Positions 14,662-41,687 of a stretch of 45,131 bases of DNA are shown one piece after another. The notes beneath the pieces were generated by a model that saw only the letters and a program-made list of their open reading frames with translations, searched no databases and was not told the origin of the DNA. This DNA comes from Octopus bimaculoides (Eukaryota), in contig NC_069001.1 in assembly GCF_001194135.2 (NCBI RefSeq), positions 1,385,601-1,430,731 on the forward strand, in the 5' to 3' direction. The position numbers and the translations under genes were made by a program. The number at the start of each line of letters is the position of its first letter. The first letter of the stretch is position 1.

Positions 14662-17600
14662 AGTACTTCAACAGCACGCCCTGGAACATTGCCTCACTGA
14701 CTCTCACTGACTGTAGTATCTCCTCTACTGCAAGAGACCTGTTTCTGTCCCTCTATTGGATTTTAACCTCTCTCACCTGGTGGCACAAAACCACCTCACT
14801 CAAAACCACACCTTGTCTCAGTCAAGGGTTCTATTTCTTGCAAGTTACTTGCTGATCTTACAGGTGCCATGTAAAAGCACCCAGCACACTCTCAGAGTGG
14901 TTGGCATTAGGAAGGGCATCCAGATGTAGAAATCTGGTCAAAACTGCCATTGGAGCTTGATGCAGTCTTGTGGGTAACTGGACCCACTCAAACTTGTTCA
15001 AACCCCAGCATGGGAAACTGACATTACTAATGATGATGGTAACAATGACATCAAGACTGAGATCTGATTCTAAATCAGGAATTACCTCCCTAATTTCTTG
15101 AGGACACTGGAAAACATATTCCTTACCGAATTAACTGTCGATTTTGGTAACTTCCAGAATTTTGAAGATTCCAAAAGCTGAGAGATTTTCTCCTTTGATA
15201 TATTTTTAGAATTATCAGTAAATGCTTTCAGAAGTTTGCAGATGGACAACAGAGATGAAGAAACGACTCTGTGGTATTTGTTTGTTAACTCATCTGGAGA
15301 CGACACTCTGAAGAGAGACAAAAAAAATATAATAAAACAGTAGGGAAGAAGACATATAAAAGTATAAAAATGAAAGACTAACAAGAGGTGCGTATGCATT
15401 TCGGTCAAACTACATGGCACTTTGGGCAAATATTTTTTTTTTATCTTTTTACTATAGCCTGGGAATGGATTTGGTAGGCAGAAAATGAAAGAAACCTATC
15501 AGTGCAGGAAAGGCTTTTAAACACAGGCATGGATGTGTGGTTAAGAATTTTGCTTCTCAGCCACATGGTTTTGAGTTCAATCCCAATGTATGGCACCTTG
15601 GACAAGTGCCTTGTATCATAGCCCTGGGATGACCAAAGCCTTGTGGGTGGGTTTTGCAGATAAAAACTGAAAACACCTAGTGTGTGTGTGTGTGTGTCCT
15701 TGACATCATGTGATAGTTGTAAACAAGCCTCACTGTTATACAGGCAGCATAGTTCATTTGTAATCTCCTCTGAAAATCTGTCCAACCATGGGAAATATTG
15801 CTTAGCTTGTAAACAGGTGAGGGTTAGTGACAGGAAGGGTATCCGGTCATAGAAAATCTACCTCAATGAATTCCATCTGACCCATGCAAATATGAGACAG
15901 TAAAATGATGATGATGATGCATCATGTGGTAAAGCAACTGTGACACTAGGTCACTAACAAACTGGAAATGCTTAGAATGCTGTTTTTATTGTACACCAAT
16001 GTTTTCGAACGAATATCCTTATCTTGGGTGTTAGTGTCCTAATATGACTATAATTCAAGAGAACTCCAATGCACAGCTTTCAAAATATTTTGCTTTTAAC
16101 CCTTTTTTCCTTTACAAAAAATTGGAATACTAAATTAAGGGCTTCTTTCAGTTTCTGTCTCCCAAATTTGCTCACAAGGCATTGGTCACTTGCTCAAGGT
16201 GCCATGCAGTAGGACTGAACCTTAGACCACATGGTCAAGAAGCAAGCTTCTTAGCTACACAGCCATACTGGCACCTACAGTCACACTAATGGGGTTCCTC
16301 TTGAAATTTTGTGGGAAATTCACAAGCAACAGGGGTAAGGGTTCCAAGGCCCTGACATTGAAAGAAGGAAGGGCTGTGCATAGAAAGAATTAGTGCAAAG
16401 CTTGGGGTGGGCGACACAATAAGGCTGATGGGACGAGGAAGAAAGCCGAGTCGGGGATACCTGATATATTAAGGTAGAAAATGACTACTTACTTAGGGTC
16501 ACTAAGTGTTTCAGGTTTTTGGTTGAGTAAATTATCAATTGTGAACTGGGAAAAAGAAAAAACAAACAAAACATTTTTAATAAACTTCACAGGGTGTGTG
16601 AGTGTTTATACAGTCTAAACTGACAGAATAGTTTGGCTGGATATGGCTGGTTCAAAAGTTAATCTTAAGGATACACATATTTTTATAATACTTACATCCA
16701 ATATGGCTTCTTGGCAAAAGCTCAACGCTTGAGCTTGTTTTGCTGCAGGAAATGCAATATTGAAGGCCTGTTGTGCAGCAGTTGCAACTGTTGGATAGGG
16801 ATCACACATACCAAGCAACCAGCTTGCCATTAGCTTCTTGAGATGCGGTGCCAACTCCCGGTGTAAAGAACCAGCCAAGACCGCCATGGACTGCTGGGCA
16901 GCTTCACGTACCCTGTGGTTGTCATCCTACAAGAAATAAAGAAGGGTAAGTCGGGTGAAGGAAATAGTTTAGACAGTCTTGGAGAGGGTAAAAAGAAAAA
17001 GAGAGACACATCTATCCTCACTCCAAGACACCTACCCTCACTACAGGCCATCTACCTTCACTACCACAAACATTATAGTCACTCCTGGCCCCTACATTAA
17101 CCATACAGTCACTGCAAGTCCCTACAAACACTCACCAAACAACCACATTACTGTCATTAACAAATACACAATACAGTTAGTAAAAGTCTCTTGTAAACTG
17201 TTTGGGATTTGCAGTTTAGATATTTCATAATTTGTGTCTCTGAGTGTTGAGTCCATCATAAAAGAATGACACCCCCCACCACCACCACCACTTCAACAAT
17301 CATCTTCACTGCTCCCTCTTCAAAAGAATACAGAAATAAAAAGTAAAACAAAAAACAGCATGGGTTACCATTGATATTTTGGAGTAGATTCGGGGCCAAT
17401 ATGGAAGTACTGCTTTAGCATCTTTGCATTCCTTGTCTTTGATCAAAGCATTGAACTCTTGTAATGCCTGAAAGGAAGAACAGAAATGAAAACCCAGAAA
17501 CTAAACACAACGAGTATTTGGTAATCTTAGTTTGGTTAAAATTCAGAATGCATTACAAGAAGACACTATCAGCTGATGTGCCTTACAACAGAGTTAAGAA

Positions 17601-22645: not shown

Positions 22646-24536
22646 TTTCAGAGTCATTGCTCATTATCAGTCTGGAGCAGCATGGCTTGCTAGCTGCCGA
22701 TGCCTATCTGCCTTTGAAAACATATTTCAAGTGAAATACATTCACTGATTTTTGAAAATAGAAATAAAGTGTCTTGCTCAAGGACACAACATGCCACCAG
22801 GAATCGACAACCTTACAATTCTGAGCCAAATCCCNNNNNNNNNNNNNNNNNNNNNNNNNNNNNNNNNNNNNNNNNNNNNNNNNNNNNNNNNNNNNNNNNN
22901 NNNNNNNNNNNNNNNNNNNNNNNNNNNNNNNNNNNNNNNNNNNNNNNNNNNNNNNNNNNNNNNNNNNNNNNNNNNNNNNNNNNNNNNNNNNNNNNNNNNN
23001 NNNNNNNNNNNNNNNNCTTGAACCTAAAACTACGGATTTGCAATTCAGTGATAAACTTATTTTAATTCTGTGTCTGCATGACAAACATGAATAATAATAA
23101 TAATAATCCTTTCTACTATAGGCACAAAGCCTGAAATTTGTGGGGAGGGGAATACGCGATTACATTGACTCCAGTGCATAACTGGTACCTATTTAATTGA
23201 CCCTGAAAGGATGAAAGGCAAAGTCGACCTTGGTGGAATTTAAACTCAGAACATAAAGACAGATGAAATACTGCTAAGCATTTCACCTGGTGTGCTAACG
23301 ATTCTGCCAGTTAGCCACCTTAATAATAATGATAATGATTATGATGATAATAATGATTATGATGATAATAATGATAAGGCTGTAGTAGAAGACACTTGCC
23401 CAAGGTGCCACACAGTGGGACTGAACCCAGAACCATGTGGTTGGGAAGCAAGCTACTTACCACACAGCCACACCTGCACCTATGTATGTATATCTATCTA
23501 TGTGTATGTGTGTGTCTTTCTCTCCGTGTTTGTTCCCCACCACCAACACCACCACCATCATCACTACCACTTGACAACCAGTGTTGGTGTGCTTACATCC
23601 CTGTAACTTGGCAGTTTGGCAAAAGAAACTGATAGAATAAATACCAGGCTTAAAAAATAGGTTGATTCATTTAACTAAAACATCTAGGTGGTGCCCCAGC
23701 ATGGCCACAGTCTAATGAATGAGACAAGTAAAAGATAAACACAATCCAGATGAAGTGATGATTGCAGTGGAGACAGGCTCAAGCAAAAATGATAAAATAT
23801 TCTTTTCTACTCTAGGCACAATGCCCAAATTTTAGATTGACCCCCAGTACGCAACTGGTACTTAATTTATCGACCCTGAAAGGATGAGAGGCAGAGTTGA
23901 CCTGAGCGGAATTTGAACTCAGAATGTAAAGGCAGATGAAATATCGCTAAGCATTTTGCCTTGTGTCTATAGCAGAAAGGATTATTATTATTATTATTAT
24001 TATTATTATCATTATTATTATTATTGTTATTATGAAAGTGGTATTTCAGCAGAAACATTAGAACACAAGAAAATAAAAGGGGTTTTGCAGTGTTTGTTTT
24101 CATCATCGTCCCTATGTTGTTTTTTTTTGTTTTTTTTTCATGTTTAGAATTCAAATGAAACCCAAGACAGCTTTACCTTCCATTCTTTTCTAGTGTGGTG
24201 GTGGTGGTTGATAAGATAAAACAGTAGTCATATAATTGACTAACTTCCATTCTTTAAAACTTACAGTCTTGCATCTAAAGCATCAGCATCACCAACACCA
24301 TCATCATCAACAATTTCAAGGCAACCATCATTGTCATCATCATCATCATCATAATCATCGTCGTCATTGTTGTTGTCATTCTTATTATATATGAGGTATA
24401 ACAGTGATAGAGCTGTGTGTGCATGTGTTTATTTGTGTGTGTGTGTATGTGCTGTGCCTGTGTGTGTGTGTGCCTGTGTGTGCATGCATGTGTGTGTGTG
24501 TGTGTGTGCGTGTGTGCAGGTCAGCAGTGTAGTTGT

Positions 24537-24673
24537 TTAACCTTCTTCTGCATTCGTACAATAACCGGCAGCCAAGAAGAAAGTCGATGCCGAAATCGAG
24601 GACAAGATGTAACACGCATACATCGTTAATTCGTTTGTGCCGTAGATAAATATTCCAGTCAGTATTGCAAATC
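24537..24673 (-). CDS. Paralogue A exon 3 (end of TM3, TM4, stop)
   Basis: 137 nt; tatttccag|GA..TAA. Confidence 0.85.
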
Positions 24674-35826: not shown

Positions 35827-37093
35827 TATTGTTTTGAGCTGATTGGGGGTGCTAGATTCCTTTGTTCAAAAATATAAGGACACAGATCGTGTCGTATAGC
35901 CAGTTGGGGACGATGTCTCCTGGGGCTAAATTACAGCAACATTCGTCCTAAACCAGGACTACCATGTGATGTTGGCAAACAATCTTTACTCCAAAGTACT
36001 GTTGCTGAATATCTCTCGTTGTGAGATTTAAGAATAGTAATTTTCTAATTCCAGAAGCTGTTTTAAAGAAATCCTTGGTCATATGACTCAGGTACTTGAC
36101 TGGTACTTCATCTTATCAACTCCAGAAGGAGGAAAGATATATTTAACCCTGGTGAGATTTGAAATCAAATATTAAAGAACCAGAACAAATACTAGATTTT
36201 CTGGCAATGCAGTACCAGGCAGTAACTCTCATGGGTTCTCATCTTAACTGATTGGAAGTGTTATCATGTACATTGTTTTGTCTTGGTATAAAAGATGGGA
36301 TACACCGAATATTTTGCTCAATACCATAGGTTTCCTTGTCAGTTGTTTGACCTTAACCAGTTGAGCATGTCTCTTGGTGGCTGACAATATGGTGTAGTTA
36401 TCAAATGCATCAGTAAAATGATGTATTGGGTAAAAAGTAAAAAAGAGACACAGGAATCAACTGCAAAAAAGATTTGTGGAGAGCAAACCCAAGAGGTTGG
36501 GGGAACCAATGAAATGGTTGTAGGATATGTTCCAAGTACCAATGCTACTGCAGGTAACTGAACCCAAGTGTACAAGTGGGAGGAAAAGAAAACATACAGT
36601 GTTCCTGAAAATAGATGCCAAGTGCCAAAAATATTAAACTGTATGAAAAAATAAAACTCAAAAAAGGGAGGTGGGGTGAATAAGAAAATTATTGCTAAAT
36701 AAAATGACACTTTGCAAGAAAAACTTAAAAGGGGAGAAGTTGTAGGGAATTAGTAATAATAGTACATCCCTCCTACGTGACGAATGGAATAACCTAGTCA
36801 CTATAAGTGAAGAGAAGTACATGAAGTATGAGAGTAGGTTGTAGGGGGTCAGAGATAGTCATGTCTTTACTGGTTTTACTAAGTATGCTGTATACTGAAG
36901 TGAGTGTTATAACAATCCAACAATGTAAGGATATAACAGATTTACCTGTTCAAACAAAGACGCTATGCACAAAACCAAATATATGGCACCCTAGGCATAA
37001 CATCAACATGAACTTCTAACTTGTTGTCTCTTGAGGTCTCTGGGTGAGACTTGGAGCCAACTTGTACAGATGCAAAGCAAAAGTCAAACATAA

Positions 37094-37129
<36 letters not shown>

Positions 37130-37952
37130 GCAATGTGAAAAAAAAAGGAAAAGCAAAAACTATTAACACTTCAATATTTATCATTTAATGCCAAAAACTT
37201 TCATACTTTCAAATGACTTCTATGTGTCTTTTGCACAGCAATTGTGTAAGTTCCAACACACGGTCTCAGATAAATTCATTTGCAAGGTAAGGACATCTCT
37301 GAGATAATAATGGTTTCAAATTTTGGCACAGAGCAGCAATTTTAAGGGAGTCGGTAATTACATTGACTCTTTGACTCAATACATACTTGTTTTGTTGATC
37401 CTGATTAAAATTTAGTTCCAAACAAAGGATTTAACCAGGGTCCAACACAATATCATTGATAACATATCTTATCTTTTGGTTCAAATCATGGCTGCTGGGA
37501 CAAAATGAAGCCAATTCAATCATTATCAGAGTTTCTATGTACCGAGAGCGAGGTCAGTCGACAAGCAAAACAGTGACATGATTCACTTTTATTTTTATCT
37601 TTTTTTTTGCAGAAAAAATAAAACAAAGACAAAAACAAACTCCCCAAGCATGGAACGAATGATGCATTTATGGGGTCACATAGAAACTTACTGTTGGCTA
37701 CCCTGAACAAGACTGGTGGGGACCCATACATACTCCAGCCTGGCCTGGCAACCTTGGATATATGTATATTATATATATGTGTGTGTGTATATATATATAT
37801 ATATATAACCCATGCTTCGTCCAACCCATGCTAGCATGGAAAGCGGACGTTAAACGATGATGATGATGATATATATATAGAGAGAGATACATATATATAT
37901 ACATATATATACAAGATGTATATCTCATATGTGTGTATGTATGTATATATGT

Positions 37953-37987
<35 letters not shown>

Positions 37988-38120
37988 CATACACACACAC
38001 ACATTCGTTATCTCTCTCCTCACCCACCTCTCTCTCTCTCCCTGGGGTGACGTATAGGACAACAATTTCCATTTTTAAACAGAAGCCACTTTTATTTATT
38101 TATTTTTCTGTTTATTTAAA

Positions 38121-38226
38121 TATAAACAAACGGAAACCTTCGCAAATGTTCTACAACCACGTCGAACAATTCAGAGAAACCGCGTTCGAGAGACTGAAGG
38201 ATACATTCGAAAAAAAAAATCAACAA
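38121..38226 (+). promoter_or_regulatory. Conserved upstream motif, copy C, preceded by TATAAA
   Basis: TATAAA at 38121-38126; TGTTCTA..GTCGAACAATTCAGAGAAACCGCGTTCGAGAGACTGAA, 31/38 identical to copy B. Confidence 0.6.
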
Positions 38227-38830
38227 TAACAACTACAACAACAACAAAAGTAATTTTTTTTTTCTTTTCGAAATTTGATACAAGGCCAGTAAATTTCGAA
38301 GCGGGAAGTCGATCATATCGATCCCTGTGCTCTACTGGTACTTACTTAACCGGCCCCGAAAGGATTAAAAGCTGAATCGATCTCGGCAGGATTTGAACTC
38401 GGAATAACTATATAACTATATCTTCGTTGTCTACAAGACTGAAGAAAAAGAAAATAACAACAAAAAAAAAAGAGAACAAAACAAAACCCAAAACGTTTCG
38501 ACATGGGGCCGTTGCGATTTTCCCTTTAATATAACCGCATAAACAATCAAAGACAAACAAATATAATTCTTTCTTCATTGACCTCAAGGAACAGGTAACG
38601 AAACGGCCAGAGTAAGGACAATAGAAAAACAAAACGGTGTGGATTTATAAATGAACGTGTAATTATTAAGAAATAATAAATAATTCTTTATTGGTCACGA
38701 GGGCCACAAAAGAAAAAAAAACCCAGAACCTCAAAGATTTTGGATGCTACGAAGACAAGGGAATCGTGCAGTTTTAGACATATAACGGGATAAACAATAA
38801 AAGAAATTACAAATTATCATAACAGTAATA

Positions 38831-38993
38831 ATGGCGAGTACAGCGGCAGTGGCGGTGGTGGCTCTAAGCCTAGCTGCCGTGTTAATGCACTTTATATCTG
38901 TTGCGATTCCATACTGGGATAAAATTGGCAATTTAAAATTTGGTCTTTGGCAGGTTTGCTACGAGGAATGTGAAAGGCGGAAATCTGGAGACG
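38831..38993 (+). CDS. Paralogue C exon 1
   Basis: aataATG; PYW..GLWQVC...C; donor G|gtaaga. Confidence 0.88.
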
Positions 38994-41687
38994 GTAAGAG
39001 CAATAGAAGAGACAAGGAGCTGTTGTGAAGTTTCATTCATTTCGTGATTGTCTTGTTAATGTTGTTGTTGTTGATGATTGGTGGTTTAAAGGCGGATCGA
39101 CTAAGGTTTCGACCGAAGCTTTAACTCGTTTCTGGATCAGTGTCTGTTGGCTTGTTTTTGTTGGTTACTTTGTTTCTTTCATTCTATTTCATTCTTTCAC
39201 TCTCTTTCTTTCTCTCTATCTATCTTACTTTCTTTTTTTTTCCTCATTCACTTCTTTTCTCTCTCCTGTCTCTTCCTTCGTTCTTTCCTTCCTCTCACTC
39301 GTGTTTTGGTGTCTCTCTCTGTCTTTCTCTATGCCTCTCTTTCTCCCCCTCTCTCTTTTTCTCTCTATTTGCTTTTTCCCCACCTCTTTCCGTCTAAAAC
39401 TAAAAAAGTGTGATACGATAGAGATTTGGCTGTTATGTTTAGCAGCTCGTACAAACCATACGCCCTTCCATTATTCGTCATATGATGAGCAACTTTGGAA
39501 GTGTGCTTTGGCTATCAGAAGTAGCACCAGAATATGTGGCATGCATACAGTAATTCTAAGTTAGCTTTTATCAAGTTTCTTGGTTCTTATCCAAAATGAT
39601 AAAATAAATGCTAATTAAAAAAAAAAAAATATATATATATATATATATACATACAAAGGTGCAGACATGACTGTAGTAAGAAGCTTGCTTCCCAACCTCA
39701 TGGTTCTAGGTTCAGTCCCACTCTCTCTCTCTTTTCCTGCTTCTCTCTCCTCCAACTGCCTCTCTCCCTCTTTCTCCTCCCTCTCTCTCCTCCTCCCTAT
39801 CCACCTTCTTTCTCTCTTTATGATCTAAAGCAGTTAAGGGCAACATCCAGCAGCCTGTGACCCATGTACCACATGAGGAGCATAGGATTTCTGAATGGCA
39901 CACCAAATGAAAATGAAAAGTGACCCTGCCATTTTGAAACTAGTGTGGCCCACCTGATGACGATGGGCTGTGTCTTCTGTGGTCTGTCTCTCAAAGAAGA
40001 AAGGTTGCCAATACCTGAACTGAAGTGTGCTGGAGACCAGCCAACCAACCAGCCAACCTACCAGCCAACCAACCAGCCAACCAACCAGCCAACCTACCAG
40101 CCAACCAACCAACCAACCGATTGACTGACCAAGCAGCCATATTTTGGCTATTATTATATAAAGGTTGTTTTTTCCTTTTCAGAATCTTTCCTGATTTTCC
40201 AGTGTCTGGAAGTAATTGGACTGATCACTGCCCTGACTACGTGTGTTGTCTCCATTTTGAGTACTTGTAAAAATGTTCCTTTTCCATACGAACAGATATT
40301 GATTCCATGTTTAAGCATGTTATCAGGTAAGTCGGTCAACTATACATCTGTATCTACACAGAAATCTGTATATGCGTGTGTGTGTGTGTGTATTTGTATA
40401 TATATATAAGTAAAAAAGTATATATATAAGTAAAAAAGTAATGCCATTTTGTTTAAGACAGGTATAATTACCAACACAGGAACATGTATCATACATCAAA
40501 ATGAAGCTGGTCCTCTGTGGATCACATCCCTACTTCTCAACATTGTCACCGTTTCTCTCAATAGCAATGTTCCACCTTCGAATGAGAGCATGTATCCCTG
40601 CCCTGTAAAATTCTGTTGACTGTTCTTTGAGCCACTTCTTCACTACAGTTTTCACTTCCTCGTCACTGGAATAATGTTTGCCTCTCAAACCCTCTTTCAT
40701 GGGGCCGAAGAGATGGTAGTCTGAAGGCACTAAATTATTCCAGTGACGAGGAAGTGAAAACTGTAGTGAAGAAGTGGCTCAAAGAACAGTCAACAGAATT
40801 TTACGGGGCAGGGATACATGCTCTCATTCAAAGGTGGAACATTGCTATTGAGAGAAACGGTGACTATGTTGAGAAGTAGGGATGTGATCCACAGAGGACC
40901 AGCTTCATTTTGATGTATGATACATGTTCCTGTGTTGGTAATTATACCTGTCCTAAACAAAATGGCATTACTTTTTGACTCACCCTCGTATGTGTGTGTG
41001 TGTGTATGTATGACAGAGTGTAAGCATCTTGAGAGAACAGTTGGGTATAAGAGGCAGCAGATGTGGTGTGCAAGGGAGACAACTGCACTGGTGTGGTCAT
41101 GTGATGTATATGGACATGCCGATCTCTAACTGTGGAGGGAACCTGTGGAAGAGGTAGACCCAAGAAGACATGAGACAAGGTAGTGAAGCATGGTCTTCAA
41201 ACTTTGAGCTGCACAGAAGCAATGACTAATGTCCGAGACCTTCGGTGATATGCTGTGCTTGAGAGGACCCATGAAGCCAAGTGAAATTGTAGCTGTGGCT
41301 GATGCTGGTGTCACATAACTGGCACCTGTGCCAGTGGCACATAAGAAGCACCTTTTGAGATTTGGGCCTCACAGAGTAAAAAGTGGTCGATGCTGGTGGC
41401 ATGTGAAAAGGACCTTTCAAAAGTTGGACATCACAGTGTGTATGTGAATATAATAATAATAATAATAATGATGATTATGATGATGATGATGATGGTGATA
41501 ATAATGTTTGTTTCTTCTACTTCCAGCTGCTACGATACTGATTGGAATTATGATATACTGTGTTGAAGAATTTACGCTGCATGTCTGTTTTGTCTTTTCC
41601 TTATGTTCAGCGGCATTTTTTTTCTTTTTTGCGGGTTATACCCTTTCGTCATCCAATTCCTCGTCATCACTCGAATTGCGTTCCTGA
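38831..41687 (+). CDS. PMP22/EMP/claudin-superfamily tetraspan protein, paralogue C (155 aa, 3 exons)
   Basis: join 38831-38993, 40183-40326, 41527-41687: [158 protein letters not shown], phases 1,1, exon 2 again 144 nt. Confidence 0.88.
40038..40100. repeat. (CCAA/CCAG)n tetranucleotide repeat
   Basis: Directly visible just upstream of exon 2 of paralogue C. Confidence 0.9.
40183..40326 (+). CDS. Paralogue C exon 2
   Basis: 144 nt; ttttttccttttcag|AA..G|gtaagt. Confidence 0.88.
40433..40990. mobile_element. Mariner-derived foldback element (two inverted copies of a transposase 3' end) in intron 2 of paralogue C
   Basis: Arms 40433-40675 and 40734-40976 (243 bp, 4 differences counted). The minus strand reads (L)[66 protein letters not shown], the mariner YSPDLAPxDY-to-C-terminus region. 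The right end is a TIR ..TACTTTTTGACTCACCCTCG followed by TA (40989-40990). Confidence 0.88.
41030..41280 (+). mobile_element. RTE-like LINE 3' fragment (decayed)
   Basis: Translates with frameshifts to ..[31 protein letters not shown].., the LRWFGHV/GRGRP motif; boundaries approximate. Confidence 0.65.
41527..41687 (+). CDS. Paralogue C exon 3
   Basis: tttcttctacttccag|CT..TGA. Confidence 0.85.

Follow-up and report, generated by a model that had tools for sequence, protein, structure and literature searches.

Gene models at the locus

The window analysed here, the whole stretch of 45,131 nucleotides from Octopus bimaculoides, contains three neighbouring 3-exon genes between positions 24537 and 41687. 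Gene A lies on the minus strand, genes B and C on the plus strand, and all models were rebuilt from the sequence. The features are as follows, with a slash marking the start-codon or splice boundary.

24537..28670, minus strand: coding span of gene A (RefSeq LOC106880284), 149 aa
28502..28670, minus strand: exon 1 of A, 169 nt; start codon (AAAATA/ATG), TM1 and extracellular loop 1 with PYW-x8-GLW-x2-C-x4-C; donor CAG/GTACAA
26155..26298, minus strand: exon 2 of A, 144 nt; TM2 and the first half of TM3; donor GTAAGTCG
24537..24673, minus strand: exon 3 of A, 137 nt including the TAA stop; remaining TM3, a 5-residue loop and TM4; acceptor TTATTTCCAG/
28671..31171, no strand: head-to-head spacer between A and B, containing the 752-N gap
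31172..34820, plus strand: coding span of the 149-aa model of gene B (RefSeq LOC106880282)
31172..31340, plus strand: exon 1 of B, 169 nt; start AAAATA/ATG, donor TAG/GTAAAA
33115..33258, plus strand: exon 2 of B, 144 nt
34684..34820, plus strand: exon 3 of B, 137 nt including the TGA stop
38831..41687, plus strand: gene C (RefSeq LOC106880283), 155 aa, free of internal assembly gaps
38831..38993, plus strand: exon 1 of C, 163 nt
40183..40326, plus strand: exon 2 of C, 144 nt
41527..41687, plus strand: exon 3 of C, 161 nt including the TGA stop
25244-25763: assembly gap of 520 N in intron 2 of A
29179-29930: assembly gap of 752 N between A and B
33820-34413: assembly gap of 594 N in intron 2 of B

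All six introns have GT-AG boundaries and the intron phases are 1,1 in each gene. The sequence GTAAGTCG serves as the exon-2 donor in all three genes, and AATA directly precedes every ATG. Exon 2 of A is the sole open 144-nt AG...GT exon in phase. The rebuilt models agree with an earlier note on this DNA, which had claimed three intact 3-exon genes with these phases and exon lengths. A search of the window for a fourth copy or an additional exon found none. Intron 2 of C contains a mariner-like peptide, for which Pfam returned no match.

The same note had described the cluster as hidden; RefSeq already carries all three genes, as the uncharacterized loci LOC106880284, LOC106880282 and LOC106880283. 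The RefSeq model of C (P0001) is identical to ours, with annotated gene bounds that match exactly. For A, the public annotation has a 149-residue minus-strand product whose end coordinate agrees, a comparison made on length and end coordinate. The RefSeq model of B (P0002, 203 aa) consists of the rebuilt 149-aa protein plus 54 N-terminal residues. We rejected this extension as the likely start, as it emerges from a CA-repeat and O. sinensis does not conserve its methionine. RefSeq also lists an isoform X2 of B, in which splicing from an in-phase alternative donor at 33192 removes 22 aa of TM3. Literature searches on five LOC identifiers and on the three SRA runs from which the transcript homologues P0008, P0009 and P0012 stem returned no mention. 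The suggestion that more copies may exist elsewhere found no backing among annotated proteins, where a search for additional copies turned up none. A word-indexed protein search returned few relatives, and transcript-derived octopus copies were absent from its results.

None of the exons is touched by the three assembly gaps in the window. The chromosome-scale O. bimaculoides assembly contains identical Ns at these gaps and therefore provides no independent check. Because of the gaps in intron 2, the joins between exons 2 and 3 of A and B rest on scaffolding and on synteny with the sister species rather than on contiguous reads from the species itself. In O. sinensis the assembly is free of Ns here, and collinearity with the window extends over the three gaps. 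All nine exons are retained in unchanged order and orientation, with equal exon-1 and exon-2 lengths and GT-AG sites, while the A/B head-to-head interval is about 1.1 kb longer than in the window. The synteny with LTN1, which had been proposed as a check, holds in O. sinensis. The orthologue of A in that species (P0004) is 78% identical.

These data bear on whether the models could be chance open reading frames or an artefact of scaffolding across the gaps. Such a suspicion could draw on the two genes out of three that have a gap between exons 2 and 3, and on the persistence of the same gaps in the newer assembly. The gap-free O. sinensis sequence, however, conserves all exons, splice sites and gene order with intact frames. 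RefSeq models exist for all three genes, homologous spliced transcripts occur in other species, and cuttlefish and mussel loci have the same exon structure. In addition, the orthologous reading frames of O. bimaculoides and O. sinensis differ by no indel, against 0.013 gap openings per bp in neighbouring non-coding DNA. At this local rate an indel-free frame has a probability of about 0.003 per gene, and hence the gene pattern is not a product of chance. An artefact is hardly credible, and A, B and C are real genes.

Protein family and predicted fold

The three proteins contain the sequence features described earlier: PYW-x8-GLW-x2-C-x4-C in A and B, with C-x3-C in C, EVxG in TM2 and FF..AG in TM4. 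The gapless alignment of A and B with 52/149 identical residues was likewise reproduced. Each protein has four hydrophobic segments. Extracellular loop 1 comprises about 27 residues and carries two conserved cysteines, which probably form a disulfide; the tryptophan, the GLW and both cysteines are invariant in all six octopus proteins of the A, B and C orthologue pairs. Extracellular loop 2 has only about 5 residues and the tails 5-13. The C-terminal endings (...AEEG, ...YNSF, ...ELRS) provide neither a PDZ ligand nor a TTPV-type ending. Calling the proteins miniature overstates a modest reduction in size, 149-155 aa compared to 160 aa for PMP22; the real shortening is in loop 2.

Single-protein Pfam searches yield only matches that are below threshold or irrelevant. 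A scores 23 bits compared to a PF00822 gathering cut-off of 26.7, B and C have no PF00822 match, and none of the three matches PF10242 (L_HMGIC_fpl) at E <= 10. The O. sinensis orthologue of A has a precomputed PF00822 match marked 'weak'. Profiles reach further. An octopus profile searched against 1.84 billion proteins retrieved 69 proteins at E <= 1e-3, and the profile relatives number about 65, with all 30 named ones from molluscs or one brachiopod. We built a family alignment of 56 proteins from 52 of the 69 profile matches and four octopus rows. PF00822 is matched by 46 of these 56 proteins (best E 1.4e-15), PF10242 in 15 distant relatives only. Comparison of the cephalopod profile with the profile of the other molluscs by hhalign yields a probability of 99.8 and an E of 2.5e-28.

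Linking the proteins to solved structures required the wider cephalopod and family profiles, as the 5-sequence octopus profile matched nothing relevant among them. With the cephalopod-only profile, human MP20 ranks first (E 8.8e-5, 25.7 bits) among solved-structure entries, which include no PMP22 or EMP; the best gamma subunit is gamma-1 with 12 bits (E 1.4). The wider family profile matches MP20 at E 1.8e-19, TARP gamma-2 at 2e-15, claudin-3 at 1.5e-11 and LHFPL4 at 7e-11.

This is complemented by structure prediction. AF2 models of C and B (pLDDT 92.2, pTM 0.85) show four helices and, predicted for loop 1, four short strands, with helices at residues 4-25, 55-83, 91-116 and 122-149 in C and equivalent helices in B. 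The predicted structures conform to the claudin fold, a left-handed four-helix bundle bearing a loop-1 beta-sheet, and by analogy with the family both termini would be cytosolic. All PDB matches listed by Foldseek are superfamily members, with TMq up to 0.80. MP20 is found at TMq 0.80, beside claudin-3, -4, -15 and -19, TARPs, GARLH4 and LHFPL proteins at TM values of about 0.8. The previously suggested identity as four-TM proteins of the PMP22/EMP/claudin superfamily is thus supported by the profiles and the predicted fold. More specifically, the predicted membership of A, B and C in the PMP22/EMP/MP20 branch of the claudin superfamily holds, through profiles and predicted fold only.

True homologues outside the cephalopods are uncharacterized mollusc and brachiopod PF00822 proteins, including Sinanodonta woodiana KAL3891546.1 (P0014), Haliotis 'peripheral myelin protein 22-like', Liolophura 'claudin domain-containing protein 2-like' and Lingula LOC106176435. 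They share the pattern P-Y-W ... GLW-x2-C-x3-5-C ... QA.E.LG with the octopus proteins. With 150-180 aa, these homologues have 10-20 residues in loop 2, and PF00822 detects most of them singly; in the cephalopod branch loop 2 has largely been lost and identity has fallen to 20-30%.

Among solved structures the lens fibre membrane protein MP20/LIM2 (PDB 9cbv) is the best sequence match and the highest or near-highest match by fold. It resembles the octopus proteins in its four TM helices, its short tails and a GLW followed by C-x4-C, as in A and B, although the identity amounts to only 9-13%. MP20 has 173 aa; W and GLW are further apart in it, and its extracellular loop 2 comprises about 20 residues. 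The octopus, moreover, does not have a vertebrate-type lens of crystallin fibres.

PMP22 and EMP1-3 share topology and size class with the octopus proteins. PMP22 exon 4 encodes TM2 and half of TM3 and exon 5 the remainder, and EMP1 has an exon of 0.14 kb (PMC9552464). The octopus 144-nt exon 2, ending in the middle of TM3, parallels these exons when compared by description rather than by codon positions. Unlike in octopus, an extra intron separates TM1 from loop 1 in vertebrate PMP22/EMP genes. PMP22 and the EMPs also carry an N-glycosylation site in loop 1 (PMC9552464). In contrast, no N-x-S/T was found in the extracellular loops of A, B or C, the sole such site lying in the C-terminal tail of C; this glycosylation is characteristic of the vertebrate proteins rather than a defining feature.

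Duplication history and divergence

In the freshwater mussel Sinanodonta, the sole non-cephalopod locus looked at (P0076), the exons measure 190/144/161 nt with phases 1,1. The first two cuttlefish exons have 154/147 nt and the same phases as in octopus. Since a bivalve shares it, the three-exon layout with its middle exon of 144 nt is ancestral in molluscs. The matching architecture pointed out earlier is therefore present in A, B and C, while as a mark of recent local expansion it fails, the mussel and cuttlefish loci being alike.

A, B and C have no one-to-one ancient orthologues; they are mutually about 35% identical and closer to each other than to any non-Octopus protein in the 1.84-billion-protein library. 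The transcript-derived protein P0008 is nearly as near to C (32-33% identity) as A and B are (35%). A second transcript-derived protein (P0009) is 67% identical to a cuttlefish protein. In a bootstrapped neighbour-joining tree of 27 sequences the orthologue pairs are recovered at 100% and a clade of A, B and C at 65%. No cuttlefish paralogue was found within 10 kb on either side of the single locus looked at. The triplication thus looks octopod-specific, with modest support. Of the lineage-specific expansion of a small subfamily proposed earlier, this triplication stands (65% bootstrap); the subfamily itself is mollusc-wide and reaches the brachiopod Lingula. Most likely, the triplet goes back to local duplication, accompanied by one inversion, in an octopod ancestor common to O. 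bimaculoides and O. sinensis.

The three genes differ in how strongly their proteins are constrained. Their dN/dS values range from 0.28 to 0.88 with intact frames. Purifying selection on C is clear (pN/pS 0.33, p = 3e-6), the signal for A is marginal (pN/pS 0.64, p = 0.045) and B is statistically indistinguishable from neutral (pN/pS 0.89, p = 0.39). The dN of A and B is 0.13-0.15, compared to a divergence of 0.09-0.13 in well-aligned intron windows. In the first loop of B, 12 of 28 residues differ between the two Octopus species. Outside a small invariant core, the amino-acid sequence of A and B evolves at a nearly neutral rate.

Such values raise the question whether one or two of the duplicates, most of all B, are redundant and drift toward loss without a function of their own. 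The pN/pS of B, the changes in its first loop and a dN of A and B close to intron-window divergence are all compatible with decay, as is isoform X2 of B, which removes most of TM3. Against this, B retains in both species an intact 149-codon frame, its four splice sites and all residues that are invariant in the family, and has acquired no indel, an outcome with a chance of about 0.003 at the local non-coding rate. Moreover, a fragment of B from O. vulgaris shows no difference from its O. sinensis counterpart across exon 2. We consider drift toward loss quite improbable.

Possible role of the proteins

The reading we favour, at a probability of roughly 0.75, is that A, B and C are three intact, octopod-duplicated paralogues, minimal claudin-fold tetraspans of a mollusc-wide PMP22/EMP/MP20-like family that would act as MP20-like membrane organisers. 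MP20 tetramers adhere head-to-head and form thin junctions (PMC11947226). By analogy, lateral and head-to-head membrane adhesion or organisation is the most likely role of the octopus proteins. They would be located in the plasma membrane, with small-residue faces of the TM helices allowing lateral packing, and the sheet of extracellular loop 1 may provide head-to-head or partner contacts. In this way close membrane appositions or junctional domains could be organised, as by MP20 and PMP22/EMPs.

The predicted fold by itself does not discriminate between functional classes, since Foldseek does not separate adhesion-type members (MP20, claudins) from channel-auxiliary ones (TARPs, GARLH4, Cav gamma-1, LHFPL5). 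The triplet could accordingly encode auxiliary subunits of ion channels or receptors, as do TARPs, GARLH/LHFPL4, LHFPL5 and Cav gamma-1, or might even be the three octopus-specific 'TARP-B' paralogues. The Foldseek scores of TARP gamma-2, GARLH4, Cav gamma-1 and LHFPL5 nearly equal that of MP20, and the family profile also detects TARP gamma-2. Orvis et al. 2022 (PMC9282427) describe four TARP-B genes in octopuses, three of which arose after the split from squid, on that account the same number as in the triplet. The cephalopod-only profile, however, favours MP20 by 25.7 to 12 bits over the best gamma subunit. TARPs, Cav gamma and LHFPL proteins (GARLH4, TMHS) have the fold and superfamily in common with the octopus proteins, yet their loop 1 and cytosolic tails are much longer. 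The octopus proteins possess neither the long first loop nor the cytosolic tail of TARPs, given tails of 5-13 residues and endings unlike TTPV, and RefSeq labels them 'uncharacterized' rather than gamma-subunit-like. An auxiliary role is unlikely, even though it is the most credible of the alternatives.

A variant reading combines the rapid divergence with the ambiguity of the fold. The three copies would form a set that is specific to octopods and under positive selection, minimal claudin folds with loop 2 virtually gone. Their fast-changing loop 1 would serve species-specific contact, in gamete or cell-cell recognition, or the proteins would be lineage-specific auxiliary subunits of cephalopod-expanded receptors, as TARPs, GARLH4 and TMHS are for their channels. 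Limited evidence speaks for it: the dN of A and B approximates intron divergence, 12 of 28 loop-1 residues of B have changed and the fold does not separate the classes. We judge it more improbable than drift toward loss.

MP20-like organisation must also be weighed against a sealing role. Like Drosophila Sinuous, Megatrachea and Kune-kune, the three proteins could be claudins of septate junctions and close the paracellular path in epithelia or glia of the octopus. Superfamily and fold are shared, and invertebrate claudin-family proteins act at junctions (PMC3879130). The classical claudins (-3, -4, -15, -19) match the predicted fold with TM values of 0.7-0.8 and have the W-GLW-C-C logic of loop 1 in common with the octopus proteins. 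The claudin loop-1 motif is W-(x>8)-GLW-x2-C-(x8-10)-C (PMC3879130), whereas the octopus proteins have x8 between W and GLW and a cysteine spacing of x3-4, as in MP20 (x4). Claudins further have a longer loop 1, a fifth strand supplied by loop 2 and, in most cases, a C-terminal PDZ ligand. Their loop 2 takes part in the extracellular sheet and in trans contacts. As loop 2 is nearly absent from the octopus proteins, a claudin-type strand is disfavoured. In sequence the proteins are nearer to MP20 than to claudins, and a dN/dS of 0.6-0.9 would be unexpected for core barrier genes. A sealing function therefore appears improbable and ranks behind an auxiliary role.

Invertebrate PF00822 proteins are well known and tandem duplicates are common. 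For this reason, and with the function being inferred, the result comes as no surprise: these are ordinary local duplicates that evolve fast within a mollusc-wide family and that public annotation had predicted before. What sets them apart is near-neutral protein divergence alongside a strictly kept frame, splice sites and small invariant core. The analysis assigns three uncharacterized octopus genes, together with about 65 equally unnamed relatives, to the PMP22/EMP/MP20 branch. Molluscs and vertebrate PMP22/EMP genes have in common that an intron interrupts TM3 and that the penultimate exon measures about 144 nt. The value of the finding lies in annotation and in the history of the PMP22/EMP/MP20 family.

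The three-gene cluster and its conservation in Octopus sinensis

Gene models were re-derived directly from the window sequence (G+C 38.6%, eight runs of N), which returned exactly the positions and exon structure proposed in the earlier note for three neighbouring small genes, here A, B and C. The rebuilt genes are:

Gene A (minus strand): exons 28502-28670, 26155-26298, 24537-24673 (169/144/137 nt)
Gene B (plus strand): exons 31172-31340, 33115-33258, 34684-34820 (169/144/137 nt)
Gene C (plus strand): exons 38831-38993, 40183-40326, 41527-41687 (163/144/161 nt)

Introns are in phases 1,1 in each gene with GT-AG boundaries in 6/6, the exon-2 donor is GTAAGTCG in A, B and C alike, and AATA directly precedes each ATG. 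Each product (149, 149 and 155 aa) contains four hydrophobic segments; the gap-free alignment of A with B has 52/149 identical residues. A tblastn search of the entire window with the three proteins found nothing beyond these nine exons.

The cluster had been described as hidden, while RefSeq already has models for all three genes, and a profile search recovers its O. bimaculoides proteins. LOC106880283 equals model C exactly and LOC106880284 is gene A; for LOC106880282, isoform X1 is model B with 54 additional N-terminal residues and isoform X2 is spliced from an alternative, in-phase donor at 33192. The AATA-ATG, which is conserved, is the better start for B: the extension emerges from a CA-repeat, and O. 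sinensis does not share its Met. In the public annotation gene A (149 residues) runs from 24537 to beyond 44820 on the minus strand. This span places the start of the transcript model upstream of C, and B and C then sit within its first intron on the opposite strand; the far-upstream start may reflect either a genuine distant 5' exon or an artefact of the model.

Assembly gaps lie inside intron 2 of A (520 N), between A and B, which point away from each other (752 N), and inside intron 2 of B (594 N). The chromosome-scale O. bimaculoides record to which the window belongs (GCA_001194135.2, CM046621.1) has identical gaps and thus provides no independent check. Microsatellites and low-complexity runs are dense at 24230-24540, 32800-33060 and 34520-34640 and near all gaps; repeats beside exons and every gap include CA/TG, TA-rich 'YIYI' runs and ATG/ATC-type triplets. 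Such sequence borders each gap and is the probable reason for the breaks in the assembly.

The O. sinensis assembly has zero N across ~50 kb of this locus and runs collinear to window 17189-44183, on either side of every gap as well. There 9/9 exons are kept in unchanged order and orientation with their GT-AG sites, and exon-1 and exon-2 lengths are equal. LTN1, A(-), B(+) and C(+) thus stand in conserved order, which bears out the linkage to LTN1 that the earlier note had suggested checking. The exon 2-exon 3 joins of A and B are supported by synteny, not by contiguous O. bimaculoides reads. Exons of LTN1 (E3 ligase listerin) occupy window 1-21000 on the minus strand. An ORF at 16615-16887 weakly matches Ltn1_1st (E 0.0035), and in O. 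sinensis the A orthologue adjoins an annotated LTN1 gene (1813 aa), with the flank collinear from window 17189 on.

Annotated O. sinensis orthologues are 78% (A) and 81% (C) identical. No B orthologue was found among the annotated proteins returned by the search; our model built from genomic sequence (CM016879.1, about 10.657-10.663 Mb) is intact, with 149 aa, three exons, GT-AG introns and 111/149 identical residues. The O. sinensis A orthologue P0004 (172 aa) extends 23 residues beyond the O. bimaculoides stop, in a tail with repeated IEG(P/S) units. In the O. vulgaris entry P0007, B exon 2 is fused to unrelated sequence.

Two foldback structures lie in and between the genes:

40429-40980, intron 2 of C: foldback inverted repeat, arms 40429-40675 and 40734-40980, 98% complementary, 58-nt spacer
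35406-35993, between B and C: second foldback, arms 35406-35673 and 35726-35993 (268 nt each), 90% complementary, 52-nt spacer

Both arms of the former encode one peptide, which we take to be the C-terminus of mariner-type transposases; a Pfam search of this peptide gave no match. The latter is probably a foldback or MITE-like element. A short interspersed repeat (~150-300 nt) occurs at 23090-23377, 24933-25243, 28291-28446 and elsewhere in the window, one copy overlapping the stretch just downstream of A exon 1, and matches at least 8 sites across the 50-kb locus of O. sinensis (73-85%).

Family assignment and gene structure

As single proteins they barely match Pfam: A reaches 23 bits on PF00822, below the cut-off of 26.7, and neither B nor C matches it. 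A HMMER search with an octopus-protein profile against 1.84 billion representatives yields 69 matches at E <= 1e-3, nearly all of 150-180 aa. Among 56 aligned family proteins, 46 match PF00822 (best E 1.4e-15), 25 Claudin_2 and 15 L_HMGIC_fpl. The named matches are without exception from molluscs (cuttlefish, chiton, limpets, abalone, Physella, Elysia, mussels, scallops, clams, oysters) or the brachiopod Lingula, and are mostly labelled 'uncharacterized', with one 'peripheral myelin protein 22-like' and one 'claudin domain-containing protein 2-like'. The ten cephalopod-type sequences and 27 others, compared profile to profile, match along their full length with 99.8% probability.

In searches of the sequences with solved structures, the profile built from cephalopods only ranks human MP20 first (E 8.8e-5), followed by claudin-19 (5.5e-3), and the family profile puts MP20 (1.8e-19) before TARP gamma-2 (2e-15), claudin-3 (1.5e-11) and LHFPL4 (7e-11). 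AlphaFold2 models of C and B (pLDDT 92.2, pTM 0.85) have four helices, four short strands in the first extracellular loop (loop 1) and a second loop (loop 2) of ~5 residues. Among the matches listed by Foldseek against the PDB only claudin-superfamily chains appear: MP20 (TMq 0.80), claudin-3, -4, -15 and -19, TARPs, GARLH4, Cav gamma-1 and LHFPL5. The predicted fold sets the superfamily but not the branch, for which the sequence comparisons point to PMP22/EMP/MP20. The family originally proposed is thus right, on the basis of family profiles, with MP20 best, and the predicted claudin fold.

The exon layout agrees with this family. The 144-nt exon codes for TM2 and the first half of TM3, the remainder lying in the last exon, like the division between PMP22 exons 4 and 5 and the 0.14-kb EMP1 exon at this place (PMC9552464). 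The first two exons of the cuttlefish homologue measure 154 and 147 nt (phases 1,1, TM3 intron at the same place), and the three exons of a Sinanodonta homologue 190/144/161 nt (phases 1,1). The architecture is thus an old family character and no sign of recent duplication. In the Sepia pharaonis locus (L007 10154-10156), intron 1 has a GC-AG donor, CAAG/GCAAGT. The deposited protein P0010 (200 aa) has its last exon mis-joined into low-complexity sequence; the true cuttlefish C-terminus resembles that of the transcript-derived homologue P0009.

Duplication history and constraint

Identity is ~35% among A, B and C and 19-33% to everything outside Octopus. Neighbour joining on 27 sequences recovers every bimaculoides-sinensis pair at 100% bootstrap, the A+B+C clade at 65%, its sister grouping with cuttlefish and transcript sequences at 57%, and all ten cephalopod-type sequences together at 52%. 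The triplication is older than the split of O. bimaculoides and O. sinensis and, with only moderate support, probably younger than that from decapodiforms. The lineage-specific expansion put forward in the earlier note is broadly upheld by the A+B+C clade; its argument from shared architecture falls with the comparable exons and phases in cuttlefish and Sinanodonta.

A, B and C have dN/dS values of 0.61, 0.88 and 0.28 between the two octopuses, with pN < pS at p = 0.045, 0.39 and 3e-6, respectively. Intron windows that align well diverge by 0.09-0.13, similar to the dN of A (0.13) and B (0.15). The three reading frames carry no indels between the species; at 0.013 gap openings per bp in flanking DNA, about six would be expected per gene (P ~0.003 of none). 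W, GLW, Cys, TM2 Glu-Val-x-Gly and TM4 FF..AG are invariant in 6/6 octopus proteins, and the largest change is in loop 1 of B (12/28 residues different). Each protein thus combines a small fixed core with quick change elsewhere.

Putative function

A, B and C are intact, conserved genes with a predicted claudin fold and closest similarity to MP20, whose tetramers adhere head-to-head and so build thin junctions (PMC11947226). By analogy, their products would be plasma-membrane tetraspans that may associate laterally, with loop 1 making close contacts. A role as classical claudins is argued against by the Cys spacing of x3-4, versus x8-10 in the claudin motif (PMC3879130), by the near absence of loop 2 and by the lack of a PDZ-type ending. 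A TARP-type auxiliary-subunit role is compatible with the predicted fold, and three octopus-specific 'TARP-B' genes have been reported in one paper (PMC9282427); however, the short loop 1 and tails and the absence of a significant sequence match to gamma subunits argue against it. A, B and C are new, fast-evolving members of a known family, for which we favour a putative MP20-like function.
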